A stretch of DNA of 64,000 nt, taken from sequence record LR756511.1. One strand, given 5' to 3'. A program made the position numbers and the translations under genes. Under the pieces are notes generated by a model. It saw only the letters and a program-made list of their open reading frames with translations, did not search any database and had not been told where the DNA came from. This document shows positions 636 through 15,661 of this stretch, in pieces; the first letter of the stretch is position 1, and each line of letters starts with the position of its first letter.

Positions 636-930
636 TGCGCCGCACAATTTGCGATGTGGTACATATGGGCAATACTGTACCCGCAATNCATGTAGCAATC
701 ACCTTTATGACCTTGAAGCTGTACTGTGTCAGTTTGCCCAAAAAGAAAACGGGCGGCTGTGGCTGTTTGACCACTGGCTCGCCCGTTTCCCCTCTGGATG
801 GTGTTTCGGAGGGTGGGGTAGTGAACATTTGCTTTTTCTTGGAATCTTTTTACCATTGGTGTTTTTTAGGGTAAAGTAGAGTAGCCAAGTTGAAGCTGTA
901 CAAACTTGGTTGTATTACGGAGGTTCGATC

Positions 931-1977
931 ATGGCTCACATGCTGGCGACTGACAATCAGGGACAGGCAATGATGGCTTACGCGGGAGCTACTCCCTGGC
1001 ATAGCCTGGGAACGGCAATTACGGATGAAGCGGTTTGCTATGATCCGCAGGCGTTCATGACCGTGGCGAAGATGGATTGGATGGCGCACAAGCGTCGTCT
1101 TTCCCGTCCCGTGCCGCAGGCGGATGGCACGGTTAAGCATGAGGACGCGAATGCGTGGGAAGTGTATCGGGAGTCGGACGGTGCTATCCTGGCGGATATG
1201 GTGGGCCAGCGTTATACCATTCTCCAGAACAAGGAAGCGTTCAACTGGTTCAAGCCGTTCCTTGAGGCAAAGGAAGCGGCGCTCCATACGGGCGGTGTCC
1301 TGTTCAATGGTTCACGCATTTGGATTCTGGCGAAGTTGAACCGTGATCCGATGGAGATTGCGGCGGGTGACATTGTGGAGAAGTATATTCTTCTCTCTCA
1401 CTCGCACGATGGTTCCCTTGCGGTGCGTGCGGGGTTCACGCCGATTCGCGTGGTTTGCTGGAATACGCTGAGCATGGCGCACAGCGACGAAGCTAGCAAG
1501 CTGATCCGTTTGAAGCATTCGAAGAACATTCATAAGAATCTCGATAATCTTCGGGATGTTATGAATGCGGTTAATGCGGAGTTTGAGGCGACGGCTGAGC
1601 AGTATCGGCTGTTGGTTTCGAAGGCCATTAACCAGGCCGATCTTCGCAAGTATGTGAAGCGGGTGTTTAAGGTGGACGCGGAAGATAACGTTATCTGGCC
1701 GACTGGCGAGCGTAGCAAGGAGATGAAGGAACTCTGCTCCGAGCGTCAGAAGCACATCTTGGAGGAAGTCTTCAAGCTGGTCGAGTCGGGCAAGGGTAAC
1801 AACCTTCCCAGCGTCAGCGGGACGTATTGGGCGGCATACAATGGGGTTACGGAGTATCTGAGCTACGTCAACGGACGTAACGAAGATAATCGTCTCAATT
1901 CCCTCTGGTATGGTGTCAATGCGACCACCAATAAGGAAGCATTGAAGGCTGCGGTGCAAATGGCAATGGCTGTTTAA
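931..1977 (+). CDS. DUF932 / TIGR03299 phage-plasmid family protein
   Basis: MAYAGATPWHSLG N-terminus, Y-x-ILQN-x-EAF, SHDGS...FTPIRVVCWNTL, YNGVTEY; GGAGG at 919-923 favours ATG 931. Confidence 0.85.
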   Translation: MAHMLATDNQGQAMMAYAGATPWHSLGTAITDEAVCYDPQAFMTVAKMDWMAHKRRLSRPVPQADGTVKHEDANAWEVYRESDGAILADMVGQRYTILQNKEAFNWFKPFLEAKEAALHTGGVLFNGSRIWILAKLNRDPMEIAAGDIVEKYILLSHSHDGSLAVRAGFTPIRVVCWNTLSMAHSDEASKLIRLKHSKNIHKNLDNLRDVMNAVNAEFEATAEQYRLLVSKAINQADLRKYVKRVFKVDAEDNVIWPTGERSKEMKELCSERQKHILEEVFKLVESGKGNNLPSVSGTYWAAYNGVTEYLSYVNGRNEDNRLNSLWYGVNATTNKEALKAAVQMAMAV

Positions 1978-2005
1978 CCCTATAGCAGCTGTACTTACAA
2001 TTCTT

Positions 2006-2260
2006 ATGAGAAAAAATGCGGTCTATCATGCGTGTCGTGTTGCGTTTCTTTGTGGGGACGAGAGGATTCCCTGGCATATGGTATGCCATGCAATCAGGCA
2101 AGGCATGGAGTCGCCTTTCATTACTTATAGGCTTCAAGAGAAGGATTATAAGAAGTATCCTCGCTTGAGGGAGCTTGTTGAGTGGATGAATGGGGAGCGG
2201 ACTCAAGAGACGGAACGTGAAGCTGTACGAAAGATTAATGAGAGGAAACGGGCCAGATAG
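2006..2260 (+). CDS. Hypothetical protein
   Basis: ORF follows motif 1987; its 3' end overlaps the tmRNA-like 5' end. Confidence 0.55.
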   Translation: MRKNAVYHACRVAFLCGDERIPWHMVCHAIRQGMESPFITYRLQEKDYKKYPRLRELVEWMNGERTQETEREAVRKINERKRAR

Positions 2261-2383
2261 GTTTCGACATAGGAAATCAGCAACTCCCCGTGCGTTGTGG
2301 CACAAGCTGAAAAAGGCCAACTGAATTAGGCTGGGAGCCAAGTGATATGCCTATGGACTTGGGTTCAAATCCCAACTGGTCCA
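2250..2383 (+). ncRNA. ssrA: Minimal tmRNA-like RNA (tRNA-like domain intact, mRNA-like domain very short)
   Basis: 5' GGGCCAG-ATAGGTTTCGAC; 3' GGAC-TTGGG-TTCAAAT-CCCAA-CTGGTCC-A; G3:U70 pair, discriminator A; P2 ATAGG/CCTAT; motif 2221 upstream. Confidence 0.8.
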
Positions 2384-2415
2384 CTTAAAGTAACCTTTTC
2401 TTGGAGGTTTGTGAC

Positions 2416-2754
2416 ATGCGGAAGCGGCCTGTTGTGACGCAAGTGACGGAACCCGTAGCAAAGATTCAGCACGATGCCAATTCGTATACTGCAATCTATG
2501 TCCTGCGGGATGCTACACAAAAGTTCCGTATGCCTGGAGTCAAGGACGAAAGCCCGCGTGCTTGGGATTATGGTCCCAGCATAATTACGGAGCGAGTGGG
2601 TCCGATGGGTTGTGAGACGGTGACGCATGATCCTGACAACAAAGCGGTCTGGAAGTGGTTGGGGGCATTGATTGCGATTGGTGCCTATGCCATGAACCAC
2701 GAAGAACTTGCGTCAAAGTTGCCTGTTGAGTTGAAGAACTATTGGGCAGCTTAA
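2416..2754 (+). CDS. Hypothetical protein
   Basis: GGAGG at 2403; stop abuts motif 2754. Confidence 0.7.
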   Translation: MRKRPVVTQVTEPVAKIQHDANSYTAIYVLRDATQKFRMPGVKDESPRAWDYGPSIITERVGPMGCETVTHDPDNKAVWKWLGALIAIGAYAMNHEELASKLPVELKNYWAA

Positions 2755-2798
2755 GCTGTACAAACTGACTTACCAAACTCAAAACCTGGAGTATAGTA

Positions 2799-3152
2799 AT
2801 GGATAAGACTTGGCAGAACTACGAGACGTGGGTAGTCGGTTTGTGGATTGACAACGATGAACCGCTCTACCATGAAGTCAAGGAAATGGCGCAGTCTGCG
2901 TGGGATGGTGCATGGCGGTTGTCCGCTAACGCACGCTTGACGGGGACCGAGCCATTTACCCGTGAGGAAAAGGCTTGCCTGAATCTTTCTCGTCAGTTGC
3001 AGAATAAGTTTGAGGAAGATAAGCCAGAGACGACGGGGGTTTGGGCGGATTTGCTTAATGCCGCCCTGGAAGAAGTGAACTGGAAGGAACTGGCCGAGCA
3101 TTTCCTTGAGAATATAGACAAGGAAAGCACTGATGAGGACGAGGAATGTTAG
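2799..3152 (+). CDS. Conserved phage hypothetical protein (W-x-NYETW...LWIDND type)
   Basis: Recognisable N-terminal pattern; GGAG RBS; motif 2754 upstream. Confidence 0.75.
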   Translation: MDKTWQNYETWVVGLWIDNDEPLYHEVKEMAQSAWDGAWRLSANARLTGTEPFTREEKACLNLSRQLQNKFEEDKPETTGVWADLLNAALEEVNWKELAEHFLENIDKESTDEDEEC

Positions 3153-3246
3153 AATTTGTGTTAGTTTTGCCTTTGATGATTTTGGTGGTGCTGATTTCAC
3201 CATATCTTTTGGTTCGTTGGCTTGTTAAAGCTGTACTGAGGGCCAT

Positions 3247-3414
3247 ATGCAAAAGAAAATGTGGGTAGTAACGTTGGTTAAGCCTCCTACTACTAATGAC
3301 TTTCGTTCAGATTATTTCCCGCGAAGGTTTCATTATAAGCGGGATGCGAATGAGTTGAAGGTGGAAGTGGAGCATAAGGGTGGGGAGGCGAAGGTAGAGC
3401 GAGCAAAGGATTAA
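3247..3414 (+). CDS. Hypothetical 55-aa protein
   Basis: Translated by hand (MQKKMWVVTLVKPP...); GAGG after motif 3229. Confidence 0.6.
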   Translation: MQKKMWVVTLVKPPTTNDFRSDYFPRRFHYKRDANELKVEVEHKGGEAKVERAKD

Positions 3415-3630
3415 AAAAAGCGGGACTCATGCGTAAGACTTAACCTGTTGGCTTAGCATGGGTATAGACAATTGCTTCAACCTTGAAACTGTCAACAGAG
3501 TTTTCGAGGGGACAAGAAGCTACCGCTTGGGGCGAAGCCATTATACTGTTTACAGTCAATGGTGGCATACGTTTCCGCTAATATGCCCAAAGTATAACAT
3601 GGAAACGTATGTTTTCAAGCGTCCCTTTTT
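3415..3630 (+). ncRNA. Candidate structured RNA
   Basis: GGGAC/GTCCC closing pair; 11-bp stem CATACGTTTCC 3566-3576 / GGAAACGTATG 3601-3611. Confidence 0.35.
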
Positions 3631-3688
3631 GAAGCTGTACTAAATGGTTCAAGCGACGAAACCAAAACACTCTTGAAAGGGGTCTACA

Positions 3689-4489
3689 ATGTCGGCTTTG
3701 GACAAACTGAGCAAGTTGCAGAAGAAGGTAAGCACGACGGAGAAGGTGAAGGAGACGCGGGAACGTCCTGAAATGACGGTGCCCGCCATTGTGAAGCTGG
3801 CATTTACCCGTTTGATTCCTGCTCAGCGTATTGCGAAGATTGCTGAGGAGCGCATTAAGATTGAGAATGCGCTTGTATCTGATGAAATGATCGGGGTTTA
3901 TGCTGATTGTTTGTTTTCGCAGGGTTGTCGTCCGACGAATCCCCGCATCAATTTGGAGAAGGATGGTCGGCCTGATATTTCGGGGCTGTTCCAGGTGCAG
4001 GAACGGTTCAAAGTTCAGTGCGAAAAGACGACGGCGCCATTGCGTGACCGTCTTATCAGCGCCTTTGTTTCGGCTGGAGTTGCTCCTGCCGTCGCTGAAA
4101 AGCTGGTGGAAATGGAGATTAAGTATCTTCCCACCACTACCCTAAAGAAGCCTCTTAATGAGCTTGCCGAAGGGACGGACGTTGAGAAGTCAGCGGCGGA
4201 AAAGATTATCGGTCTGTGTATCGGTGAAGCGGTTGAACCGTTGACCGATGACGAACGAGAAGCGGCAATTTTACAGTATGAAGTTGCCGAAGTCAAGGAT
4301 GGATTCCTTGAGCGTGTAAGGGGTTACGTCACTTCGGCACAGCAGTTGAAGCTGGTGTTTAAGGTTGTGACGCCTGTTCATTTTGTGAGTCATGGGAAGT
4401 TTGGCGAGTCGGATACGCCAGAGGAACAGGTCAAGCGATTGGCAGAGGAAGCGGCCAAGCTGGTTCTTGGCACGCCACTGAAGAAGTAA
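3689..4489 (+). CDS. Hypothetical protein, 266 aa
   Basis: Long ORF, RBS, motif 3633 upstream, terminator downstream. Confidence 0.8.
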   Translation: MSALDKLSKLQKKVSTTEKVKETRERPEMTVPAIVKLAFTRLIPAQRIAKIAEERIKIENALVSDEMIGVYADCLFSQGCRPTNPRINLEKDGRPDISGLFQVQERFKVQCEKTTAPLRDRLISAFVSAGVAPAVAEKLVEMEIKYLPTTTLKKPLNELAEGTDVEKSAAEKIIGLCIGEAVEPLTDDEREAAILQYEVAEVKDGFLERVRGYVTSAQQLKLVFKVVTPVHFVSHGKFGESDTPEEQVKRLAEEAAKLVLGTPLKK

Positions 4490-4509
4490 GCGGCACGGTC
4501 CTGTCCCAA

Positions 4510-4543
4510 GGGGAGTAGGGTAACACCTACTCCCCTCTTTTTT
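4510..4543 (+). terminator. Intrinsic terminator
   Basis: GGGGAGTAGG-GTAACA-CCTACTCCCC then a T-run. Confidence 0.8.
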
Positions 4544-4593
4544 GCGCCACTTGTTATAAAGCTGTACTTAAGGCTAAACAAAGGGGGATTATC

Positions 4594-4785
4594 ATGTTGC
4601 CGAATACTGTGGGCGAGTTGAGGGAGTTTATCAAGGGCTTGCCTGATGAAATGCCGTTCAATCTGGAAGTAGATGTTAGTGTGGATACTGTCAAGCTGGA
4701 GGTAGAGGATCAGCTTTCGGGCTATGACGGCAAGAATTACGTCTATAAGAAGATGTTGGTCTTGACGGTGGACGTGTCTTGTTAA
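4594..4785 (+). CDS. Hypothetical protein
   Basis: Between motifs 4560 and 4786; GGGGG RBS. Confidence 0.7.
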   Translation: MLPNTVGELREFIKGLPDEMPFNLEVDVSVDTVKLEVEDQLSGYDGKNYVYKKMLVLTVDVSC

Positions 4786-4807
4786 AGCTGTACTAAAAGG
4801 GTTTACC

Positions 4808-5113
4808 ATGAAAAAAACAATGTCAATTCTGATGGTTGTGGGCAAACGATGGTTTAATCGTGGCCCTGGTAACACCTACCATTCGGCAGCGATTTATGTC
4901 GATGGTGATTGTGTCCATAAGATTGATTATGCCTATGGTTATGGCGATCAATACTTATGGAATGCATCGCTTTGGCTGGAAGAAAATGGTTATCTTCCTG
5001 GTCGAACGCACAGCAGTAACGGAAGTCGTGAAGCCCTATGGCGTTATTGCGAGCGCATGGGGATTAAATTCTCTTACAATGTCTCTGATGTGCAAAGGAA
5101 GAAAGACCTTTAA
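4808..5113 (+). CDS. Conserved phage hypothetical protein
   Basis: KRWF...GNTYHSA...YGYGDQY pattern; between motifs 4786 and 5115. Confidence 0.75.
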   Translation: MKKTMSILMVVGKRWFNRGPGNTYHSAAIYVDGDCVHKIDYAYGYGDQYLWNASLWLEENGYLPGRTHSSNGSREALWRYCERMGIKFSYNVSDVQRKKDL

Positions 5114-5157
5114 CAGCTGTACTAAAAGCGTTGTAACTCTAACTCAAGGAGATTCAG

Positions 5158-5628
5158 ATGAGCGTTGAAGATGCCATGAAGGATTTGATTGATGACCGTA
5201 TTTCTGAGGCTGACCTGAGTGACAAGATTCAGGATGAACTGCCTAACTTCAATGAGAAGATCGAAGAGGCGCTGAAGGATCACGATTTCAGGGATGCGAT
5301 TTCGGATGCGTTGGACGATTACGACATGGATCAGGACATCGGCAAGGCGCTGGAGCATTTCGACTTTAGCGATGCGGTTTCGGAAGCGTTTAGCTATGAC
5401 CGTCGCGTTCAGCACACGCTTAAGACGGAAGTGCGTGAGCGGGTTGACGATCAGGTGGGCGAATATGTCCAGTCGCCCGAATTCGTTTCGCTGGTGCGTG
5501 GCGTGGTCGTTAATGTCCTTTGGGACATTTTCACGCTCAAGGCATTGCGGGGCAAGGCAACGGTGTATAAGGCGGAAGTGATTAAGTTCACAAAGGATCA
5601 GGTGAGTCGGCTCCGTAAGGCAGCTTAA
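5158..5628 (+). CDS. Acidic helical-repeat hypothetical protein
   Basis: AAGGAG RBS; repeated D-F-x-D-A-I/V-x-D/E-A pattern. Confidence 0.75.
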   Translation: MSVEDAMKDLIDDRISEADLSDKIQDELPNFNEKIEEALKDHDFRDAISDALDDYDMDQDIGKALEHFDFSDAVSEAFSYDRRVQHTLKTEVRERVDDQVGEYVQSPEFVSLVRGVVVNVLWDIFTLKALRGKATVYKAEVIKFTKDQVSRLRKAA

Positions 5629-5687
5629 AGCTGTACTAAACGTGGTTGTCGGTTAAACAACAACTTTTCTCTTTCTCAAGGGGGTGC

Positions 5688-6077
5688 ATGATGGCGTTCG
5701 AAGTGTTCGGTTCCTACCGTGGTGAGGCGATGGTGGCGGGTGATGCTCTGGAGGTTTACGATGACGGGGTTGTGAATCCCGCTCCGAAGCTTCGCAAGCC
5801 GCGCAATGACAAGGGCGTGCCGCGTGGCCCGCGTAAGGTTGCTCCGAAAGTGGTCGCAAAGACCGCTCCGAAGGGTAGCAAGCGTGGCCCTGGTCGCCCG
5901 CGTGTCTACAATGGTCAGGTTCGCCGTATTGTGGGGTCGTTCCTCAAGAAGTACGGTCTGACCAAGGGAATCGAGAAGCTTGCGACGGAACGCAAGATCA
6001 AGGTTTCCCTTACGCTGGCCCGCTCCGTTGCGGAACAGTATGGGATTGAGTTCAAGCTGGGTCGTCCCGCCGCGTAA
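5688..6077 (+). CDS. Basic protein with AT-hook-like motif, putative DNA-binding
   Basis: KRGPGRPR and GRP motifs; K/R-rich. Confidence 0.6.
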   Translation: MMAFEVFGSYRGEAMVAGDALEVYDDGVVNPAPKLRKPRNDKGVPRGPRKVAPKVVAKTAPKGSKRGPGRPRVYNGQVRRIVGSFLKKYGLTKGIEKLATERKIKVSLTLARSVAEQYGIEFKLGRPAA

Positions 6078-6086
6078 TGCGGCTAC

Positions 6087-6128
6087 GGGGAGCAGGGGCG
6101 GATGTGCCCCTGTCTCCCCTTTTCTTTT
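6087..6128 (+). terminator. Intrinsic terminator
   Basis: GGGGAG-CAGGGGC...GCCCCTG-TCTCCCC plus T-run. Confidence 0.75.
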
Positions 6129-6308
6129 GCCCTCTAGCTTTTTATAAAGCTGTACTAAAAACGGGTGTAGCTTTACCTTACTGGAGGATTGCAATGGATC
6201 GTGAAGAGATGATTGAAGTGATTGTGGCTGACGATTGCGGGGATGTTGTGGTTGTGCGGGTTTGAAAAGGCTGGCGATTGGGTTCACGATAACATCTAAA
6301 GCTGTAAA

Positions 6309-6392
6309 GGCCGCGTGGCGAAATTGGCAAACGCAACGGTCTTAAGAACCGTTACCCGTAAGGGTTTGCGGGTTCAAGTCCCGCCGTGGCTA
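6309..6392 (+). tRNA. tRNA-Leu(TAA)
   Basis: Acceptor GGCCGCG/CGTGGCT; anticodon arm ACGGT-CTTAAGA-ACCGT; long variable arm; GCGGG-TTCAAGT-CCCGC; CCA not encoded. Confidence 0.92.
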
Positions 6393-6435
6393 TTATAAAG
6401 CTGTACTTAAAGGGTTATCTCTAACGGAGGATAAC

Positions 6436-6729
6436 ATGGATCTACGCGACGCGCTGGACGAGTTTGAAACGCAGGAAAACCTGAGTCGAAATGAGGGGAC
6501 AACGGGCGTCAAGAATCTCTGTCGCATTGTTCACGCGATGGGATATAAGGACCGCCAGTATTTCGGACAATTCCATCAGGCGGGAAGTTATGGCGATCTA
6601 ATCACTTTCCTTGAGGACAATCCTGGCTGCGTGGAAGCAATCAAGGACTGGATTGCCGAGCAAGACGCGATGGAATGGGCGGAAGAGTTGGAATCGCATC
6701 TTGATGCGAAAGATGAGGACGAAGATTAA
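6436..6729 (+). CDS. Hypothetical protein
   Basis: GGAGG RBS; between motifs 6399 and 6729. Confidence 0.75.
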   Translation: MDLRDALDEFETQENLSRNEGTTGVKNLCRIVHAMGYKDRQYFGQFHQAGSYGDLITFLEDNPGCVEAIKDWIAEQDAMEWAEELESHLDAKDEDED

Positions 6730-6766
6730 GCTGTACAAACAGCATTAGTGAAACACTGTGCGAGAT

Positions 6767-6944
6767 GGACGAAGGGTAAGCCGTAAGCCAAGCGCACTGT
6801 CTATCCAGTCGGCAACGGTTCTCTGGCTGGCTCCATGCAGGGGTTAAGCTGGGGCAAGATTTCTCTAGCGCAACCGCGATAAAACGGCAACGCCCGATCA
6901 GGGTGGGGCCGCTGACGGTGAGGAAGCAACAGTTACCCTAGTCC
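6767..6944 (+). ncRNA. Candidate structured RNA
   Basis: Closing stem GGAC-GA-AGGGTAA / TTACCCT-A-GTCC; no ORF in the track; follows motif 6729. Confidence 0.45.
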
Positions 6945-6965
6945 GTTACATTCAAAGGGGCAATC

Positions 6966-7238
6966 ATGGCAAAGGTCTATCAAGCGGTCAATCCTGTCTA
7001 TAACGAGGACATTCAACCCTGGCCTAGCTCTTATGAGCTAGTGGCCGAAGTGGACACGGACAATCTTGAGGTTGCTTTCCAGCAAACCAATACGATTATG
7101 CATCCGTGGTGGGAGAATGTGGACGTGGCGGCGTTCAAGCGTGCCCGCTCAACGTCAGTCGGTGACATTGTGGAAATCAAGGGTAAGTTTTGGATGGTTT
7201 GTATGGCTGGCTGGAAGGAAGTCACCAAGCTGTACTAA
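6966..7238 (+). CDS. YodL-like domain protein
   Basis: RSTSVGDIV...W-x-V-x-x-x-GW pattern. Confidence 0.55.
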   Translation: MAKVYQAVNPVYNEDIQPWPSSYELVAEVDTDNLEVAFQQTNTIMHPWWENVDVAAFKRARSTSVGDIVEIKGKFWMVCMAGWKEVTKLY

Positions 7239-7246
7239 AGGCTAAC

Positions 7247-7495
7247 ATGAAACTTTACGAGCAAGCCGACAAAACTGGTGACAAGGTGACGTATTCCTGG
7301 CTACTAGAAGCCCCTTATAACATGCGGGGGCGTTTAGTAGACTGGAAATGGGTCAAAGGTGTAGGTGGCAAGGGCTGTTATGTCACTAACAACCTATTGC
7401 TTGCTATCGTAACAGCAAGGCGGTTCGGGTTGGGCAAGCCGATTAGTAACGGAACGCACGGTTCTGTTAAGGCTGAGATGAGTAGCTTTAGCTAA
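7247..7495 (+). CDS. Hypothetical protein
   Basis: ATG 11 nt after motif 7228. Confidence 0.6.
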   Translation: MKLYEQADKTGDKVTYSWLLEAPYNMRGRLVDWKWVKGVGGKGCYVTNNLLLAIVTARRFGLGKPISNGTHGSVKAEMSSFS

Positions 7496-7544
7496 AGAGA
7501 GTCATGCAGCTGTACAAAACGGTGTTGTGTAACTGAGTTCTAAC

Positions 7545-7757
7545 GTGAAGGAGATTGGAATGCTGGTCGTGCTGAAGGGAACGCATCCTGTTGAGGGTGA
7601 GCTTTGCAATGAGTTTACCCTGAATGAACGGGATACGGCGGTGCATGTTGGGAAGCGATGGTTGGCGAAGGGATGGCGTCCGCGTCTGTTCATCAAGTCC
7701 TTCGATGGCCGCTTTACTTGGCTCACTTCTTCTCTGGCCGAGCGCAAGGCGGCGTAG
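7545..7757 (+). CDS. Hypothetical protein
   Basis: After motif 7508; hairpin follows the stop. Confidence 0.65.
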   Translation: MKEIGMLVVLKGTHPVEGELCNEFTLNERDTAVHVGKRWLAKGWRPRLFIKSFDGRFTWLTSSLAERKAA

Positions 7758-7950
7758 TGCTGGGACAGGGGAGGGGCAATCCTCTCCCCTGTCAGTAAAA
7801 GGGCGTGGATAAAGCTGTACAAACGTAAGTCATGGGAGCTTATTCAATGCTATTATGGCTGATTTGCTGTTGGTGGCCATGCCTTGTGATCCCGCACGGA
7901 AAGTCGCATGACATTTTACCATTGCTAGATTTTGGAGTAAAGTGTAAAAG

Positions 7951-8039
7951 GAACCTACCTATAGTCGTGGGCTGAACAGGGGCGGGGTTCGCTCCGTCCC
8001 TAAAGACTACTAAATTGGCGACTAATTAGAGGTTGGTTC
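7951..8039 (+). ncRNA. Candidate structured RNA
   Basis: Nested stems GAACC-T-ACCT/AGGT-T-GGTTC, TAGTC/GACTA, and a 10-bp UUCG-capped hairpin 7978-8001. Confidence 0.35.
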
Positions 8040-8062
8040 GATGAGACTGGTTTGCGAGACTG

Positions 8063-8100
8063 GCACGGTGGGCGAAGGCCAAGCCCACCGTGCATTTTTT
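8063..8100 (+). terminator. Intrinsic terminator
   Basis: 11-bp stem GCACGGTGGGC/GCCCACCGTGC then ATTTTTT. Confidence 0.85.
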
Positions 8101-8140
8101 CGCTGCTCACTCTTATAGAGCTGTACTAACTGAGGATACT

Positions 8141-8587
8141 ATGAGTCAAATTCTTGTAATCATGCAGGGTCCGAGCGGTGGTGGCAAGTCAACTCTTGCC
8201 AATACCCATATCAAGCCGTTGCTTGAGGCTATGGGGCACACTGTCCGCATCTGCTCGACGGACGATCAGTTTAAGGTGGACGGCGTTTATCGCTTTGATC
8301 CGACCAAGTTGACGGCCTACCATGCCATTAACCAGAAGCTTGCTGCTGAAGCTTTGGAGCGTGGCGAGAGCGTTATTGTGGACAATACGAATCTTGCTCG
8401 CTGGGAAGCGAAGCCGTATGTTCAGGTGGCGCATCGTTTAGGCATTCCTGTTTCTTTCCATCATGTCGATGGGAACTATAAGAATGTTCACGGTGTTCCT
8501 GATGGAAAGGTGGAGCTAATGCGTTCCCGCGTTGAACCTTTGACGCTGGAAGGGTGTCTAGGTGCCAAGGCGCCGTGGGAGAAGTAA
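8141..8587 (+). CDS. P-loop kinase (AAA_33 / polynucleotide-kinase-like, N4BP2-type)
   Basis: Walker A GPSGGGKST, CSTDD, VIVDNTN, NVHGVP. Confidence 0.85.
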   Translation: MSQILVIMQGPSGGGKSTLANTHIKPLLEAMGHTVRICSTDDQFKVDGVYRFDPTKLTAYHAINQKLAAEALERGESVIVDNTNLARWEAKPYVQVAHRLGIPVSFHHVDGNYKNVHGVPDGKVELMRSRVEPLTLEGCLGAKAPWEK

Positions 8588-8665
8588 AGCTGTACAAACC
8601 AAACTATCAATCCTTCAACTGGAGTGGTAAGATGGCACACAATAGTTTTAAGTGATGCCAGTGAA

Positions 8666-8761
8666 CCCGTTGTCACTCTTGACTGTCGTTTCCTGAACCT
8701 GATGCGAGTATCGGAAGAGTTTGTTCAGGCTCAGAGGGACGGCATTGGGGTGACAAGCGGG
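8666..8761 (+). ncRNA. Long irregular hairpin (candidate ncRNA)
   Basis: CCCG-TTGTCACTC / GGGGTGACAA-G-CGGG, TGTCGTTTC/GGGACGGCA, CTGAAC/GTTCAG. Confidence 0.45.
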
Positions 8762-8855
8762 GATTTGACAAAGCCGAAGCGAAGAAAGACGGAGGAGTAG
8801 AATATATCCTCCGTTGAAGCTGTACTAAATCAGCTATCTCTAACGGAGGATAAAG

Positions 8856-9962
8856 ATGTTGGCGGTTCAGGAATATCTCAAGAGCGGCAAGACGTTCGAT
8901 GATCTCCATACGGAGCTTGGAATCGAAGTCAATCGAAGCAAGAAGCTGCCGCTTGCAAATCTCAATTACAGTCAGATTAATTCCCCAAAGACGCACCCGA
9001 TTGTGCGGGAATGCCGTGGTCTGACGTTGCGCTCCGACGATTACTCTCTCGTTGCGCGGTCATTCTGGCGGTTTTATAATTGGGGTGAAGTCGCGGACGA
9101 AATGCCGTTATTCGATTGGTCTACGGCGTCTGCGGATGAAAAGGTGGACGGTTCACTCTGCAAGTTCTACTTCTTTGAGGGAGAATGGCGAGTTGAAACC
9201 CGTGGTTCATTCGCGGATATGCCGATGTTCTACAACGAATGGCAGGCAATGTATCATAACATGCCTGCGGATTGGACCTGGAAGCAAGGCATTCTCGTTG
9301 CGTTGAACATGAAGGATTTGAACGAGTTAGACTCATACCTGGATCGAAGCTGTACGTATGCGTGTGAGTTCTGCTCGCTCTGGAATAAGGTTGTAAGGGA
9401 TTACCCGAAGCCGTGCATTTACCAGCTTTCCCGATTCGTTGGGGAGGAGGAAATCGGGCCGAAGTCAGTTCCTTGTTTCCTTGACGTGCGACAGTTCCCG
9501 TTGCGGAATGCGGATGATGTGATGGAGTTTGTGACGGCGCATGATGGCAAGGAGCTTGAAGGGTGTGTGGTCAAGGATGCGGGGTTGCGACGTTGGAAGA
9601 TCAAGAATCCCAAGTATTTGTCCCTTCACAAGATGAAGGGAGCGAACGGGGATGCGCTGTATCATCCGAAGTCCTTATTCCCTTATATCATGGATGGGGA
9701 AGGGGATGAGTTGCTGGCGGTTTATCCTGAAGTCAAGGACGTATTCCGCCACTATAAGGATATGGTGGACGAATGTTACGTTGAATTGGATAAGCTGTAC
9801 GAAAAGACGAAGCACATTGAGAACCAGAAGGAATTTGCTCTGGCAATCGTGGGCAAGCACAAGTTGCATGGATTGTTGTTTGAAACTCGTAAGCGGGGTT
9901 TGCCGCTCAAGGAAACTTGGCGGTTATGTCCTGATTATGTGTATAAGGGGCTGTTCAAGTAA
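8856..9962 (+). CDS. T4 Rnl1-like RNA ligase
   Basis: EKVDGS (motif I), TRGSF (Ia), EFCSLWNKVV (III), EGCVV (IV), KIKNPKY (V). Confidence 0.88.
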   Translation: MLAVQEYLKSGKTFDDLHTELGIEVNRSKKLPLANLNYSQINSPKTHPIVRECRGLTLRSDDYSLVARSFWRFYNWGEVADEMPLFDWSTASADEKVDGSLCKFYFFEGEWRVETRGSFADMPMFYNEWQAMYHNMPADWTWKQGILVALNMKDLNELDSYLDRSCTYACEFCSLWNKVVRDYPKPCIYQLSRFVGEEEIGPKSVPCFLDVRQFPLRNADDVMEFVTAHDGKELEGCVVKDAGLRRWKIKNPKYLSLHKMKGANGDALYHPKSLFPYIMDGEGDELLAVYPEVKDVFRHYKDMVDECYVELDKLYEKTKHIENQKEFALAIVGKHKLHGLLFETRKRGLPLKETWRLCPDYVYKGLFK

Positions 9963-10121
9963 AGGAGTGATGATGTTTGATCTTGAGACATTGGCTGCAA
10001 TCAATAAGGAACGCGGCCTTGCATCAGCAATGCCGAGCAACGGCGTCGTGATTTCTTCTTGAAAGAGAAAGCTGTACAAACTGGGCTAGTGAATCCTCAC
10101 TATCCTTCCTAAGAGGTAACA

Positions 10122-10289
10122 ATGGGCTGGCAACGTAAGCAATATGACAAAAGTGGTGGCAAAGTCCGACGTGTGTTTAGTGGCTCAAAGGATTGGACCC
10201 GCGAGCAAAAGCAACAAATCGAACAGTATCAGGAGCGATACGACCGTGACAACGAATCTAATCAAGACGAACGACGAAAGGCGGGATAA
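10122..10289 (+). CDS. Hypothetical 55-aa protein
   Basis: Hand-translated MGWQRKQYDKSGG...; GAGGT RBS; motif 10070. Confidence 0.55.
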   Translation: MGWQRKQYDKSGGKVRRVFSGSKDWTREQKQQIEQYQERYDRDNESNQDERRKAG

Positions 10290-10415
10290 CCCGCTACCGT
10301 GGGAAGACCCCTGGATTGATCTTGGCGGCGAGGGGTGAGCATTGAATATCTCCGCTTTCTTCTTGGTTCGCCAAGGTGGAAGCGGAGAATTCGTTTAAGC
10401 TGTACTAACAACATC

Positions 10416-10646
10416 ATGACTGGAAAATACTCTCCCACGATCTATTGGGCCTATCAACATGACCAGGATTGGCATAGAGTCGCCAGCAATGGCGACCTTT
10501 ATGATCCCGATGGTTATGATAGCTATGGCTATAACAGTGACGGCGTGGACCGAGCGGGACATACGGAATGGGATTATGCCCAAGATGACTTGTATGAGCG
10601 AGTCTTACACCAATGGGCTGATAAAGCTGTACTAAAAACATCATGA
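10416..10646 (+). CDS. Hypothetical protein with YD-x-DGYD-x-x-GY repeat
   Basis: ATG 10 nt after motif 10398. Confidence 0.65.
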   Translation: MTGKYSPTIYWAYQHDQDWHRVASNGDLYDPDGYDSYGYNSDGVDRAGHTEWDYAQDDLYERVLHQWADKAVLKTS

Positions 10647-10831
10647 ACGAAGAACTCATAGCCGACCTGTATTACATTGGTGAGTATGCGAAGTATGCTC
10701 GCGTAATGATCGAGCATAATCGCCGTCCCCTTCCTGGGATACTCAACCAAATGCGGGATTTGGCTGAGAAAGTGCAGCGTCATTTCGATCCCCAATTAGA
10801 GGAGTGGTGCAATGGTGAAGCCCGACGTTGA
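10643..10831 (+). CDS. Hypothetical protein
   Basis: ATGA overlap with the previous stop; motif 10625. Confidence 0.6.
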   Translation: MNEELIADLYYIGEYAKYARVMIEHNRRPLPGILNQMRDLAEKVQRHFDPQLEEWCNGEARR

Positions 10832-11000
10832 ATTGACAAGTGCAATCGGCGGCAAAATCTTTTACAACGGGCGAATCTTCGACATCGCCAAGAGTAAACG
10901 AGGCTGGGAAGTATTCCACATGGCGAAGGAGGTTGCCGTAACCGCAACCGTAGAAAAGGCTTGTGCCTTTCTTGCGGAGCAAAAAGAACAGACCAAGTGA
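10812..11000 (+). CDS. Hypothetical protein
   Basis: GAGGAG RBS; coupled to the previous ORF. Confidence 0.55.
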   Translation: MVKPDVELTSAIGGKIFYNGRIFDIAKSKRGWEVFHMAKEVAVTATVEKACAFLAEQKEQTK

Positions 11001-11112
11001 GCTAGGGGGCTTAGGCGCTGGACGGGGATAAGGATGTGACCATCTGGCTGTGAGAGGGCCAGCCTCTTAAAGCTGTACTTAAAGCTTTATCTCTAACCTC
11101 AAGGAGTCCAGC

Positions 11113-11370
11113 ATGTATGATCCCGAAAAGGAAGGCAAGGAGTTCGCGGACGCTTTCAGCAGGTTTGTGAACAACATGAATCGCACGCCGAAAAAGCACG
11201 CGATTGAACACATGCTCCGCGATCACCCGACCTTGCAGCAAGGCATGGTGCGCTTCTTCATGGAATTCATGGAGGAACTGGCCAAACAGACAGGCGACTT
11301 GCGCAATGAGGGCAGCATCAAGCTGGCCAAGGAAATCAGCAAGATGGAGCGTTATCTTCCCTGCATCTAA
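11113..11370 (+). CDS. Conserved phage hypothetical protein (HPTLQQ type)
   Basis: Motif 11071 plus leader with AAGGAG; terminator-like hairpin after. Confidence 0.75.
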   Translation: MYDPEKEGKEFADAFSRFVNNMNRTPKKHAIEHMLRDHPTLQQGMVRFFMEFMEELAKQTGDLRNEGSIKLAKEISKMERYLPCI

Positions 11371-11377
11371 TGGGGCA

Positions 11378-11416
11378 AAAGGGCGGGACTGCAACCGCCC
11401 ACCCCTTTTCTTTTTT
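11378..11416 (+). terminator. Intrinsic terminator
   Basis: GGGCGG/CCGCCC stem plus T-run. Confidence 0.6.
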
Positions 11417-11634
11417 AAAGCTGTACTGAGAACAGGCAACATATCGCCAATGTGCCAACGGGCGCTTTGTCGATGGGTATTGCTCAGGTGCCGATGGCGG
11501 CAATCGTGCTGATGTGCCAGTTTGTTCGCGGGGAAATCGCAACAACGCGATATGAACAGTGGTCATGGGAATGGCAGCAACTCCCCCGTAATTAAAGCTG
11601 TACTAAAAGGGTTATCTCTAACGGAGGAAAACCC

Positions 11635-11871
11635 ATGATTGCTCGCGTCCTTGGCACCAATGCACGGTTCTGCAACAAGAATTGCAAGCAAAGCTTCAAG
11701 GAAGATCGACAGAGCGGCCTTAACTATGGCTTGCATCGCGTCAATGGCGTGTTTTGCTTGCATCGGGAAGAATGGTCACTGGTAGCGTGCCAGTGTGCCT
11801 ATTGCGGGGAGAAGGTGGAAGGGGAGATTCCCGACTACCTCAAGGAAAAGTTTCAGGTGGGGGCGGTTTAG
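11635..11871 (+). CDS. Cys-rich hypothetical protein
   Basis: C-x3-C and CQCAYCG; motif 11596. Confidence 0.7.
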   Translation: MIARVLGTNARFCNKNCKQSFKEDRQSGLNYGLHRVNGVFCLHREEWSLVACQCAYCGEKVEGEIPDYLKEKFQVGAV

Positions 11872-11928
11872 TTACAGCTGTACGAAATCGAGTTGTAACA
11901 GCAACGAATCCTTAACGGGGAGAATCGC

Positions 11929-12310
11929 AATGGACAATCGCTTCACCATCGAAGTCAACCGCTACTTCATCGAAACCGAAAAGAAGAACAGCAAGGGAAA
12001 GCCCGTCATGATCCCCATTGACGTGCGCAAGATGACCATTAACGGGGATTTCATCGGGGCGGTTTGCTTCCAAGCTACCGTCGTGAAGCGCGGCGGGGAA
12101 CAGTATATCTCCGTCAAAAAGCTGGTCCCCCCGACCAAACCCAAATGGCCGTGCGTGCTTATCGACAAGCCGCAAGAGCCGAAATGGGTGAAAGAGGGAA
12201 GCTATTCCCTGGAGAAATTCAAGAAATGGCTCAATCCCTACTTCAAGGGACGCGCCGAAGCAATCGTCAGCGAATTGCTGACGGCGCCGCCCGAAAACCT
12301 TGCGGCATAA
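11929..12310 (+). CDS. Hypothetical protein
   Basis: GGGGAG RBS; motif 11876. Confidence 0.7.
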
Positions 12311-12316
12311 GGGATT

Positions 12317-12352
12317 AGGGGACGGGGAGCAATCCCGTCCCCTTTTCTTTTT
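12317..12352 (+). terminator. Intrinsic terminator
   Basis: GGGGACGGG-GAGCAAT-CCCGTCCCC plus T-run. Confidence 0.8.
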
Positions 12353-12444
12353 GCTTTCTTGTTGATATAAAGCTGTACTTAATTCATCATACTACAGGAT
12401 TAAAGCTGTACAAAAAGAGGTATCTCTAACATAAGGAGAATGCG

Positions 12445-12753
12445 ATGCGGGCTACCTCTCCCGAAGGGCTGGTTGGCAAGAACGTGCAGTTTTCGTTGTG
12501 GGGCTATGTGCCCGATTGCACGGGCGAGGACGTGGACAAGGATACCAGCGGGGAAGTGCGCGGCGTCATTGAAGGGGTAAACCTCAAGACGGGCATTTGC
12601 AAGGTCAAGCCCACCGAATTCCGTCCCAATGTTGGCGGTGCGGAGTGGTCAGGCGACGTGAGCGACAGCAACATGCGGGGCCATTTGCTGAGCCTGAGTC
12701 ACTGGTATGACGACCATTTTGAGGAATACTTCTACAATCTGGACGTAATCTAA
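12445..12753 (+). CDS. Hypothetical protein
   Basis: Motif 12404 plus AAGGAG. Confidence 0.7.
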   Translation: MRATSPEGLVGKNVQFSLWGYVPDCTGEDVDKDTSGEVRGVIEGVNLKTGICKVKPTEFRPNVGGAEWSGDVSDSNMRGHLLSLSHWYDDHFEEYFYNLDVI

Positions 12754-12813
12754 GGGGAAGCGGGGACAGCAAACCCGCCTAATCTCTCTTATAAAGCTGT
12801 ACTTGAGGCTAAC

Positions 12814-13083
12814 ATGGACGCAAAAGACCTTGCCTTTAGTTTCTGTGGCTTGACGACAGATCAGAAGCGGCGGGAGTTCATCCAGCGTGAGCTAGGGAAC
12901 AATCCGTTGCATCATGCTCTGTTTGCCCGCGAATTAACCTTCCTGGGACATCCGCACGATTGGATTTGCTACAGAGATGCCATGAAACAGCTATATGGGC
13001 GATGCCCCGTATGCGATAGTTTCGGCACCTCTCCCGTTACGGAGCATACCTACGATGAGGGTTGTCTGTGTAAGCGACCCTAG
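12814..13083 (+). CDS. Hypothetical protein, C-terminal CPVC...CLC
   Basis: Between motifs 12795 and 13088. Confidence 0.7.
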   Translation: MDAKDLAFSFCGLTTDQKRREFIQRELGNNPLHHALFARELTFLGHPHDWICYRDAMKQLYGRCPVCDSFGTSPVTEHTYDEGCLCKRP

Positions 13084-13141
13084 TAAGAGCTGTACAAACT
13101 GAGTCAGTGGCACCTAACACCTTTTAGGAAAGGAACGACTG

Positions 13142-13396
13142 ATGACGAATCTGGAAGTGATGAAAGCCGTGGCAGAGGGCAAGATGACGGCAGAAGAGGG
13201 CGAGCGCTTGCTCAAGGAAAAGAAGCTGAAGCTCAAGGTGAGCAACAAGGGCGCCGTGCAACTCGACGGGCTGCGCCGCTTCCCTGTCACGCTCTACAAG
13301 AAAGAGTGGCAGGCGGTGCTGGAAATGAAGGACAGCATCCTCAAGTTCATTCAGGAAAACGACAAGCGGCTGACGGAAAAGGGTAGCGACGACTAA
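13142..13396 (+). CDS. Conserved small protein, SHOCT-like N-terminus plus KVS-x-KG...RFPVTLY domain
   Basis: EGKMTAEEGERLL and RFPVTLY-x-x-EW patterns. Confidence 0.7.
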   Translation: MTNLEVMKAVAEGKMTAEEGERLLKEKKLKLKVSNKGAVQLDGLRRFPVTLYKKEWQAVLEMKDSILKFIQENDKRLTEKGSDD

Positions 13397-13486
13397 CCTT
13401 GTGGGGCGGGGACAGCAAACCCGCCCCTATTCTTTCTTATAAAGCTGTACTAAAGAGGGTATAACCTTAACCCAAAGGAGTCAGCA

Positions 13487-13681
13487 ATGCCGCGAATGAC
13501 GAAAGAAGAGAAGCGAATCGAGAAGGAAACGGAACAGGCTTTCAACAAGAACGCCAGCGGTATTCAGTTCGACATCATGGATTTGGGCAAGATTCATCAG
13601 GCAGGAGTGAACGCGGGCAAGGCCAACCAGAGCATCGAAGAAGCGGTCAAGGCCGCAATCCAGACCTACCGCAAGAACTAA
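13487..13681 (+). CDS. Conserved phage hypothetical protein
   Basis: Motif 13443 plus AAGGAG. Confidence 0.7.
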   Translation: MPRMTKEEKRIEKETEQAFNKNASGIQFDIMDLGKIHQAGVNAGKANQSIEEAVKAAIQTYRKN

Positions 13682-13743
13682 GGGGCACGGCGGGGACAGC
13701 CAACCCGCCTATTCTCTTTTAAAGCTGTACTAAATGAGGCATT

Positions 13744-13935
13744 ATGCAACTCATTCGCTTCCAAGTTGGCGACCGTGACATGCTGATTCAAGCGGCAGAT
13801 GAGTGGTCCGCCCGCGAAAAGCTGAAGCAATACCTCAAGCGGCATCCGATGCTGCTGGTGCGATATGAGGATTGTCGATGCAAGGAAGTATGCGGGCATG
13901 TTGCAGATGGCATCTATACGCTGGGGAACAAATGA
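13744..13935 (+). CDS. Hypothetical protein
   Basis: Motif 13723, GAGG. Confidence 0.6.
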   Translation: MQLIRFQVGDRDMLIQAADEWSAREKLKQYLKRHPMLLVRYEDCRCKEVCGHVADGIYTLGNK

Positions 13936-14165
13936 ACGAACCGCAAGTAGGCGACCGTGTATTGTATCATGGTCGTTTTGACAACGTGGTGGAAGGGATA
14001 CTAGCGGAACGTATCCTGTCCCCACTGACGGGCAATCCCCGTTACCGCGTGGTCGATTCATGGGCAGAAGCCAAGGACGAAGAAGCTGGAAGATGGATCG
14101 ACGTGATGGAAATAATTGGCATCTATCCCAGCTGTACTAAAAGGAATATCTCTAACAAGGAGTGA
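13932..14165 (+). CDS. SH3-like hypothetical protein
   Basis: QVGDRVLY start; ATGA coupling. Confidence 0.55.
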   Translation: MNEPQVGDRVLYHGRFDNVVEGILAERILSPLTGNPRYRVVDSWAEAKDEEAGRWIDVMEIIGIYPSCTKRNISNKE

Positions 14166-14168
14166 CCT

Positions 14169-14348
14169 ATGTGCCAGTTTTGCGGTCAGCCGTGCGGTCA
14201 GCGGGAGTTCTGTGACGAAGCCTGCTACAAGGAGTATCAGGAAGAGAAGGCGATTCAGGAAGCCAGCATGAGAGAGGACGGAATCTCTCAGTTCTACGTC
14301 GATCCCTTCGATGAACCCTACCATTCCGACGTGCAAGGCGGGCTATAA
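14169..14348 (+). CDS. Cys-rich 59-aa protein (TRASH-like CxxC...FC-x-x-x-C)
   Basis: Hand-translated MCQFCGQPCGQREFCDEACY; motif 14130 plus AAGGAG. Confidence 0.6.
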   Translation: MCQFCGQPCGQREFCDEACYKEYQEEKAIQEASMREDGISQFYVDPFDEPYHSDVQGGL

Positions 14349-14416
14349 AAGCCCGTCCGTTTTCTTGTTTGTAAAGCTGTACTTAATACATTACCTCTAA
14401 CGCAAAGGAGAATGGA

Positions 14417-14716
14417 ATGGCACAGCGGCATATCATCAAGACGATCAACCCCAACGGCATCCCATCGCGGCTCGAAATCGACTTGTGGGAAATGAAGCAC
14501 GATTGCAACATCCAGCATGTGCAACGGCTTTACGTGGCATTCAAGCAAGGCAAGCGGCGCAAGATCAAGCGGCTCCGAGTCAATGAATACAAGAGCTACC
14601 CGTGCGAGTTGTGCGGCTCGCATACCTATCTTGATGCGGTTGTGGGCCGAAGTGTATTAAAGCTGTACGAAATACAGCAAAGGGAGGACAAACATGGGAC
14701 CATGCTTGTGCGGTGA
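14417..14716 (+). CDS. Hypothetical protein with CxxC
   Basis: Motif 14375 cassette leader. Confidence 0.7.
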   Translation: MAQRHIIKTINPNGIPSRLEIDLWEMKHDCNIQHVQRLYVAFKQGKRRKIKRLRVNEYKSYPCELCGSHTYLDAVVGRSVLKLYEIQQREDKHGTMLVR

Positions 14717-14903
14717 TCTTCGTTGTGGGTCATGTGGACCAGCACAAGGCAACAGCAAGTGCATCATTTGCGGCAAATGGGCCGATGAGGGGGGCTGCAC
14801 TGATCCCAAGAAGTGCGAAGAGGAACTAATCAAGTTTGAGGAAGCGTGGGCGAAGCAAGAGGAAGAATGGTCCAGAATGGAGGCAAACCTCGACCTGTAT
14901 TAA
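14694..14903 (+). CDS. Cys-rich hypothetical protein
   Basis: CLCG-x-x-x-C-x-x-C, CIICG; GGAGG RBS. Confidence 0.65.
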   Translation: MGPCLCGDLRCGSCGPAQGNSKCIICGKWADEGGCTDPKKCEEELIKFEEAWAKQEEEWSRMEANLDLY

Positions 14904-14939
14904 GCTGTACAAATGAGGGAGCAGGCTCAAACCTGCGTT

Positions 14940-15090
14940 GACAGGATGGACGGGGAATACTGGTTGCGGATTCGCACTCCGCTAGGGGCGTACGACCCTA
15001 TGAACTCCAACCCGCTTGAGATGGGAGGGAGAAGGCTAACCAGACTTAAAAAGCGGAGCTAAAAGGCCGCTGAACCCGTCCTACCCTGTC
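14940..15090 (+). ncRNA. Candidate structured RNA (or 49-aa ORF 14913-15062)
   Basis: GACAGG-AT-GGACGGG / CCCGTCC-TAC-CCTGTC closing stem; bracketed by motifs 14903 and 15096. Confidence 0.4.
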
Positions 15091-15131
15091 GTTAAAGCTG
15101 TACGAAATCCATTACCTCTAACACAAGGAGA

Positions 15132-15317
15132 TTGGTGATGGACAGTCTGGAAGCGTGGTTGGATTTTCGTCGTGGTGAGCGTTACGAACCGTCCCATCCT
15201 TGCTGCTTCCATTGCGGCGGGGAATGTAGCGGGGACACAACCGAAACCGTCACCATATACGACGACGTAACAGCGGAAAAGCCCATCTGCGATAACCCCG
15301 AAGAGTGTCCCAAGTAA
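15132..15317 (+). CDS. Cys-rich hypothetical protein
   Basis: CFHCG...ICD-x-x-x-C. Confidence 0.65.
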   Translation: MVMDSLEAWLDFRRGERYEPSHPCCFHCGGECSGDTTETVTIYDDVTAEKPICDNPEECPK

Positions 15318-15397
15318 AGGCAGGCAGGGGAATGCAAACCCTGCCTATTCTTGTTTATAAAGCTGTACTTAAAGCTTTACCTAACAAGGAGAATACT

Positions 15398-15661
15398 ATG
15401 AAGGTCGATTTCAAGCTTGCGGATTATCTCTCTCCTCGCGGCAAGTATCCTTACTCGCAACTGGCGACCGACTTGGAAACGGCGCTTGCCAGCGGCAATA
15501 CCGTCTATCTCTGGTCGGTTCCTGGTTTCTTCATGCTCAGTGGTCATCCCGATCCCAACAATTACGGCAAGAAGTGGCGCCCGTGGTCGGACGGCGAACT
15601 TGACTATCGAACCGCGAAGGATGCGCTTAACGGGAAGAACGGGAAAGCTCCATTGCGTTAA
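15398..15661 (+). CDS. Hypothetical protein
   Basis: Cassette leader shared with the next gene. Confidence 0.7.
   Translation: MKVDFKLADYLSPRGKYPYSQLATDLETALASGNTVYLWSVPGFFMLSGHPDPNNYGKKWRPWSDGELDYRTAKDALNGKNGKAPLR

Follow-up and report, generated by a model that had tools for sequence, protein, structure and literature searches.

A 134-nt candidate mini-tmRNA encoded in addition to a full-length tmRNA in a 595-kb phage genome

The first 64 kb of sequence record LR756511.1, the unannotated 595,163-bp genome of an "uncultured phage" (100% identity, identical coordinates), form the stretch of DNA analysed here and are called the window. Near its beginning lies a 134-nt gene that, judged from its sequence and from that of its relatives, is a genuine second transfer-messenger RNA (tmRNA), stripped to the tRNA-like domain (TLD), the helix P2, a hairpin at the site of pseudoknot 1 (PK1), and a stem-loop showing an A-rich leader and a two-codon message. 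We put at roughly one in two the probability that this mini-tmRNA accepts alanine and acts as a rescue RNA or competitor without a degron, which would free ribosomes without marking proteins for destruction. Tag-less rescue and a decoy or competitor role remain the two leading readings.

The original prediction had placed a minimal tmRNA with almost no coding region at this site, and all of the elements that it listed lie where it put them (Table 1). The Rfam tmRNA model RF00023 matches positions 2250-2386 with 50.4 bits (gathering score 47, E = 6e-17); both TLD halves and the start of P2 are aligned, and 65 nt replace 300 model positions in between. The predicted acceptor stem with G3:U70, the discriminator A and the tmRNA-type junctions are all present, and the pattern of the T-arm junction occurs once in the window compared to 0.05 expected occurrences. 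An unconstrained minimum free energy (MFE) fold yields the acceptor stem, the three predicted P2 segments (P2a, P2b and P2c, 14 bp in total), the GUGC hairpin and the T arm, as well as a 4-bp AGCU/GGCU stem, the folding energy being unremarkable by itself (z = -1.47). The additional helix makes the interior a three-way junction; of the interior with one small hairpin that had been envisaged, the GTGC/GCAC hairpin therefore stands, and the single arm does not. The four pseudoknots typical of tmRNA have no counterpart in the mini-tmRNA, for which the fold shows two small stem-loops only. The gene encodes no CCA, and CTT follows the discriminator at 2384-2386. Two other assignments were rejected: (i) tRNA-Ala (RF00005), given the lack of an anticodon arm and of an ARAGORN tRNA, and the assignment of the site to tmRNA in Rfam clan competition, and (ii) mitochondrial tmRNA (RF02544), given that RF00023 is the best model of the tRNA/tmRNA clan at the site and that the gene is in one piece and not permuted.

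Relatives were reached via homologues of the proteins encoded on either side of the gene, with the downstream 112-aa open reading frame (ORF) as bait for syntenic contigs, which came from JGI, ENA and Logan assemblies. At the same position, these contigs hold the RNA in four more distinct versions: one shared by loci L120, L121, L122 and L124, and one each in L132, L131 and L125, the last recurring in L127 and L128 with one base difference. The relatives' RNAs have the same architecture at 135-137 nt, and RF00023 scores of 49.5-58.2 bits exceed the threshold in all five homologous loci tested. The covariation sought among homologues is present in an alignment of five sequences (the window and the four distinct relatives) scored on the originally predicted helices: pairing is intact in 98.7% of cells, and both partners have changed in 10 of 30 pairs. 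Each of the six helices, which include the three P2 segments, has one or more of these double changes. When the partners are slid, 34-43% of cells are paired with 0-1 both-side changes, and shuffles never match the real alignment. G3:U70 is kept as G:U in all five sequences; the GG and TCGAC of the D-loop analogue are invariant, as is the P2 internal loop GCAA/CCRAG except for its single R position. The additional 4-bp stem was read by eye from the sequences because MAFFT misaligned that stretch; it is AGCU/GGCU in the window, AGCC/GGCU in L120, L131 and L132, and CAGG/CCUG in L125, such that the window and L125 differ at 4/4 pairs with pairing intact. A further 4-bp pairing, a pseudoknot between GUUG of the hairpin loop and CAAC, was discarded, being possible in the window and L125 and interrupted by an A-A mismatch in L120, L131 and L132. 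These patterns of change argue that the interior is a conserved three-way junction, in which P2c leads into the hairpin and into a stem with a 20-23-nt loop carrying an A-run followed by GCC, and that the mini-tmRNA is selectively maintained as a structure. Because the short architecture and its compensatory changes recur in independent assemblies from all three sources, an assembly deletion from a full-length ssrA, which the original prediction had named as a threat to its claim, is ruled out. A blastn search of the element against GenBank phages found the source record alone, where a second match is to the 3' end of a full-length tmRNA gene of the same phage, and DNA patterns specific to the family had no match in IMG/VR or GTDB genomes.

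Table 1. Positions of the mini-tmRNA, its elements and its neighbours in the window.
Feature	Position	Strand	Evidence or remark
Mini-tmRNA gene, 134 nt, G1 to discriminator A	2250..2383	+	RF00023 50.4 bits; covariation in all helices
Acceptor stem, 7 bp, GGGCCAG / CTGGTCC	2250-2256 / 2376-2382	+	G3:U70; discriminator A 2383; pairs 4 and 5 changed on both sides
D-loop analogue AUAGGUUUCGAC, tmRNA-type TLD junction	2257..2268	+	Aligns with GGaUUCGAC of the Rfam tmRNA consensus
P2 5' strand: P2a ATAGG, P2b ATCA, loop GCAA, P2c CTCCC	2269-2273, 2276-2279, 2280-2283, 2284-2288	+	Pairs with 2333-2354
P2 3' strand: GGGAG, loop CCAAG, TGAT, ATG, CCTAT	2333-2337, 2338-2342, 2343-2346, then ATG, 2350-2354	+	Fold, covariation
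Hairpin GTGC-GTTGTG-GCAC, at the PK1 position of standard tmRNA	2290..2303	+	MFE fold; 2/4 pairs changed on both sides
Second junction arm, 4-bp stem AGCT/GGCT (2305-2308 / 2329-2332) with 20-nt loop	2305..2332	+	MFE fold
A-rich leader GAAAAAG (2309-2315), then micro-ORF GCC AAC TGA (2316-2324; Ala-Asn-stop)	2309..2324	+	
GGAC junction (2355-2358) and T arm UUGGG-UUCAAAU-CCCAA (2359-2375)	2355..2375	+	Rfam alignment; two T-stem pairs changed on both sides
Upstream 84-aa ORF, function unassigned	2006..2260	+	No Pfam match; homologues found; stop TAG 2258-2260 inside the RNA gene
Downstream 112-aa ORF, function unassigned	2416..2754	+	Ribosome-binding site GGAGG 2403-2407; no Pfam match; 21 homologues
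AGCTGTAC, phage-specific promoter-like or transcription-unit motif	2221..2228	+	21 nt 5' of G1 of the RNA

The loop of the second arm provides an opportunity to ask whether the mini-tmRNA carries a message. The frame GCC AAC TGA, proposed earlier as one possible reading, is present, and the loop reads GAAAAAG GCC AAC UGA in the window, L120 and L132, among which the 17-nt stretch GAAAAAGGCCAACTGAA, the most conserved of the interior, is identical. The corresponding loops are GAAUAAG GCC AAC UGC AAG UAG in L131 and GAAUAAG GCC CAC UGC UAA in L125. The GCC frame is thus closed in 5/5 family members, after 2, 2, 2, 4 and 3 codons and by TGA, TAG or TAA, with neither of the other two frames consistently closed; L120 already holds the UAG that serves L131, where UGA became UGC. 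A rough post-hoc estimate of the chance probability of this family-wide closure is ~0.02, which is suggestive only. A longer frame of seven codons (GCU GAA AAA GGC CAA CUG AAU UAG) was considered and rejected, its stop being lost by a 1-nt insertion in L120, L131 and L132. GCN is the usual resume codon of tmRNA, and the linker from the hairpin to GCC measures 12 nt, which we take to be similar to the distance from PK1 to the resume codon in E. coli tmRNA. The E. coli molecule keeps its activity when its four pseudoknots and tag body are replaced (PMC2481249).

The mini-tmRNA is not the phage's sole ssrA. A full-length tmRNA of 353 nt is encoded in the same genome at 341,280-341,632 on the minus strand (ARAGORN; locus L049 27280-27632), with the tag ANPEFAMAA and an RF00023 score of 122.2 bits, and its presence makes the mini-tmRNA an additional, specialised paralogue. 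This second gene had escaped the original prediction, as had the 4-bp helix, the unencoded CCA and the failure of ARAGORN to call the mini-tmRNA. The two T arms are one loop base apart, and CTT stands in place of CCA after both genes; their acceptor stems (GGGGGCG/CGCCTCC in the full-length and GGGCCAG/CTGGTCC in the mini-tmRNA) differ at three pairs, all of them compensated. The full-length gene possesses a sigma-70-like promoter (TTGACA, 17 nt, TATATA) and an intrinsic-terminator-like element composed of a hairpin and a T-run, whereas the mini-tmRNA lies in a AGCTGTAC-dense block of tiny ORFs. The placement of two tmRNAs under what appear to be different promoter types suggests that the two may divide the work by time or by substrate. 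A scan of the whole record for TLD-type genes found these two only, and ARAGORN, applied piecewise to the rest of the record, called 63 tRNAs and the one full-length tmRNA. The 3' CCA is encoded in 4/63 of these tRNAs; since the other 59 are without it, CCA addition is the rule for RNAs of this phage. The 63 tRNAs include one with a CUA anticodon, of the amber suppressor type (L046 15588-15661, minus strand, record ~179,588-179,661; labelled tRNA-Pyl by ARAGORN). The stop reassignment that this tRNA brought to mind was discarded, as reading TAG or TGA as sense lengthens ORFs no more than does TAA in a crude ORF-length test. In addition, the Rfam tRNA model matches 48527-48647 on the minus strand of the window (47.9 bits) with a 51-nt insertion between anticodon stem and T arm and without an ARAGORN call; an unusual insertion or intron in a tRNA could account for it, as could a pseudogene. 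SmpB was detected nowhere in the 595-kb genome by tblastn (best E = 3.8) with a probe that Pfam confirms as SmpB (1.5e-57). Published work on huge-phage genomes reports tmRNAs and SmpB in some genomes, detected with ARAGORN (PMC7162821).

The mini-tmRNA gene is flanked by two plus-strand ORFs without a Pfam family, and a DUF932 gene lies further upstream. The octamer AGCTGTAC occurs in 93 copies in the window compared to 0.98 expected, on the strand that matches gene orientation. It precedes nearly all small ORFs between 0.7 and 19 kb, and is located 5-45 nt ahead of the start codons of very small ORFs; its extended consensus is T..TaAAGCTGTACtAAa. The copies lie at 717-19183 (+) and 19097-62311 (-) of the window, 2221-2228 and 2754-2761 being examples. 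Beyond the 93 copies in the first ~64 kb, ~40 more extend to about 300 kb, with almost none thereafter. The octamer is also found in related contigs (L115-L125), where its distance from the homologous RNA downstream is 14-24 nt in L120, L132 and L125; it is degenerate in L131. AGCTGTAC probably signals a phage-specific promoter or transcription unit, and the mini-tmRNA would accordingly have its own phage-specific transcription start and a short leader that is cut off by RNase P. The interval between the upstream gene and the mini-tmRNA yielded no terminator. The stop codon of the upstream ORF falls within the RNA gene in 3/3 lineages: in the D-loop analogue in the window, in the acceptor stem in L125 (~2823-2825), and at 2754-2756 in L120, where the ORF continues to the TGA of the micro-ORF itself. 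Because of this overlap, an RNase P cut at G1 of a read-through transcript would leave a non-stop upstream mRNA. Such a stopless mRNA would itself be a substrate for ribosome rescue, and the arrangement may be mere gene packing or functional.

Taken together, these features would allow the following sequence of events. The mini-tmRNA would be transcribed from its own AGCTGTAC signal, trimmed by RNase P and 3' nucleases, and completed by CCA addition, as must occur for 59 of the 63 phage tRNAs. Charging with alanine would follow from G3:U70 and A73, identity elements that are present in the sequence. Host SmpB and EF-Tu would then bind the RNA and deliver it to ribosomes stalled on broken mRNAs, where the nascent chain would pass to its alanine; the ribosome might subsequently read Ala-Asn and stop at the stop codon in the loop, or leave without resuming. 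Either way, the product would bear no degradation tag, and the mini-tmRNA would free ribosomes in competition with the tag-adding tmRNAs of host and phage.

To place the family in context, we surveyed IMG/VR and JGI metagenomes with narrow pattern scans and a strict structural filter, such that the counts are minimum values and the lengths give no more than an indication of their distribution. At least 137 distinct short tmRNA-like genes were found, falling into length groups of 60-89 nt (at least 86 sequences) and 110-139 nt (at least 46 sequences), and 136 of the 137 listed have GGG..., G3:U70 and the discriminator A. Such genes are common in viral contigs (loci L001-L320). When scored with a covariance model built on the family of the window, other families of ~135 nt reach 40-69 bits and forms of ~80 nt reach 36-53 bits; by this measure, both are relatives of the family and not members. 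Many of the longer genes share a hairpin and an A-rich-GCC loop. This motif lies 31-50 nt before the 3' GGAC, mostly 38-45 nt, and the conserved distance points to a specific role, coding or otherwise. The module 5'-CCRAGUGRY-3' opposite 5'-RYCAGCAA-3' occurs in both P2 orientations: CCAAG is on the 5' strand in family A (L015, L071, L091, L093, L112 and others), and on the 3' strand in the window's family (2276-2283 / 2338-2346) and in the L003, L028 and L083 groups. The 137-nt marine mini-tmRNA of the L003 type was sought in cultured phages and given up there, as it matches only the T arm of ordinary tmRNA genes, of which the one inspected, that of Calle_1, is annotated at 360 nt. TLD-only-like matches covering at least 80% of the query occur in 7 GenBank records, including mycobacteriophage DS6A, with a tmRNA annotation in 0/7. 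The DS6A element was located at NC_023744.1 ~28,480-28,559 (80 nt), and three further unannotated elements are in the cultured actinophages BRock (KX925554.1 97142-97210), LuckySocke (OR725497.1 17977-18044) and GiJojo (PP725410.1 17025-17092). A literature search found no paper on phage tmRNA forms of ~120-138 nt.

Several observations weigh against the reading as a tag-less rescue RNA. First, the position at -4 from GCC is U in L131 and L125; in E. coli tmRNA, the equivalent base A86 is indispensable for setting the frame (PMC2481249). Second, stops in the GCC frame are not enriched across the class: in 23 dereplicated mini-tmRNAs of 105-140 nt, a stop closes the GCC frame, counted from the conserved A-rich-GCC motif, in 11/23 and the other two frames in 7/23 and 11/23. 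Third, the 77-80-nt TLD-only forms examined, including DS6A, also have an A-rich loop although they are too short to hold a message; the motif may thus serve structure or binding instead, perhaps as what is left of PK1. Fourth, the ring inside the closing pair of P2c comprises only ~48 nt, making its threading through the 30S mRNA channel questionable. Fifth, the RNA is absent from related contigs with the same flanking gene (L115-L119, L126, L129 and L130), which marks it as a dispensable, accessory gene. Finally, ARAGORN, run on the window for tRNA and tmRNA, called only a tRNA-Leu, and no tRNA, tmRNA or tag at the mini-tmRNA site. The Rfam check proposed in the original prediction thus came out above the gathering score and the ARAGORN check came out empty; we read the latter as the program's need for a tag and pseudoknots and not as evidence against the RNA.

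The first three of these points also favour a non-productive decoy or inhibitor, a possibility to which we give distinctly less than even odds. Here the RNA would titrate SmpB, alanyl-tRNA synthetase or EF-Tu, or enter stalled ribosomes without resuming, with the conserved loop as a binding element; host trans-translation would be shut down, and phage proteins would be spared tagging and degradation. A TLD-only molecule resembling that of DS6A strongly inhibits tmRNA, perhaps by SmpB titration (PMC4131195), and expression of the DS6A form in E. coli is reported to inhibit the endogenous tmRNA (PMC11915505). Deletion of tmRNA restores the propagation of viruses whose proteins are otherwise tagged (PMC6207430), and host SmpB would be limiting, given that no phage SmpB was found. 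However, the phage's own tag-encoding full-length tmRNA would suffer from the inhibition too. The TLD alone would suffice for a decoy, yet 54 extra nucleotides are conserved as a covarying three-way junction, and the in-frame stop is maintained through three different codons. The near-universal alanine identity of the class argues that charging is needed for these RNAs, which would then act on the ribosome and not merely soak up SmpB; retention of G3:U70 and A73 likewise counts against an SmpB sponge, which needs no alanine identity. Overall, the covarying junction together with the maintained in-frame stop tilts the balance for this family towards a micro-message that is read, with the addition of Ala-Ala-Asn, against the strong rival of a competitor that does not resume.

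The overlap with the upstream ORF in 3/3 lineages, and the lack of a terminator between the two, would equally be expected of a tRNA-like processing signal, a site for RNase P and 3'-end cleavage of an early polycistronic transcript whose tmRNA features are inherited baggage; the cut inside the upstream ORF might then create a non-stop mRNA deliberately. We regard this explanation as quite improbable, as RNase P needs neither G3:U70, the discriminator A, the UUCGAC/GGAC SmpB-type junction nor the interior loop, all of which are conserved, and the RNA has a AGCTGTAC motif of its own in 4/5 relatives. The least credible alternative is a functionless element, either a duplicate in decay or what assembly or recombination left of the full-length ssrA or of an attP-type fragment of ssrA, for although the T arm and CTT trailer nearly match those of the full-length copy and several related contigs lack the element, compensatory changes in every helix and a length kept across independent assemblies contradict it, as does the presence of both TLD halves, unlike attP fragments.

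If the mini-tmRNA is active as a tag-less rescue RNA, it would provide a natural definition of the minimum rescue RNA, consisting of the TLD, P2, one hairpin and a loop, and would separate ribosome recycling from proteolytic tagging, a separation usually seen only with engineered tmRNA mutants. A bolder version, which we consider doubtful, is that this pseudoknot-free 134-nt RNA is the smallest complete tmRNA known, with a two-codon hairpin-loop message on which it would carry out full trans-translation, ending at UGA after the addition of Ala-Ala-Asn alone; the phage, using it next to its normal tagging tmRNA, would thereby sort stalled products into those kept and those destroyed, and the family would be one of a large, essentially undescribed population of phage tmRNA derivatives of 77-138 nt. 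An active mini-tmRNA would also be a novel way for a phage to intervene in the quality control of host translation, which is relevant because viruses can be kept from propagating by the tagging activity of host tmRNA (PMC6207430). Reduced tmRNA genes seem, from the survey, to be common in viral metagenomes; ARAGORN missed the copy in the window, and the TLD-only elements in GenBank records are unannotated.

The mini-tmRNA shares with standard one-piece tmRNA (RF00023) a TLD with G3:U70 and A73, the GG..UUCGAC and GGAC junctions and the T arm, as well as a long P2 with a conserved internal loop, and a structured element ahead of an A-rich linker and its GCN codon; its score passes the Rfam threshold. 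It differs in its length of 134 nt versus about 350, in the lack of pseudoknots and of helix 5, and in a message of at most two codons that is placed in a hairpin loop and has no ...LAA or ...MAA degron, and it is missed by ARAGORN. Jakobid mitochondrial tmRNA, which the original prediction had cited, is indeed of the tag-less kind, but DS6A is nearer. The jakobid and oomycete mitochondrial and the Mallomonadaceae plastid tmRNAs without a tag frame (RF02544; PMC11915505) are likewise reduced with the alanyl-TLD kept, their SmpB is encoded elsewhere, and rescue without tagging is presumed for them, as for the mini-tmRNA. These organellar RNAs are mostly permuted two-piece products of genome reduction, whereas the mini-tmRNA is an additional one-piece gene in a genome that, at 595 kb, has no lack of space. 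Plastid tmRNAs without a coding sequence are reported alongside the two-residue tags of Fermentibacterota (PMC11915505); the latter (Ala-Ala) provide a natural precedent for a two-codon message, in what we take, by that source's wording only, to be otherwise ordinary bacterial tmRNAs, unlike the mini-tmRNA. The closest precedent is the "TLD only" tmRNA of DS6A (Mao et al. 2009, cited through PMC4131195 and PMC11915505), with which reduced phage tmRNAs were already known. It is likewise phage-encoded and drastically reduced, with alanine identity intact and an A-rich loop, and is thought to interfere with or bypass tagging. At 80 nt, it comprises the TLD and a single hairpin; the 54 extra nucleotides of the 134-nt mini-tmRNA provide the three-segment P2, the three-way junction and the closed micro-ORF, and the mini-tmRNA, unlike the DS6A form, coexists with a full-length phage tmRNA.

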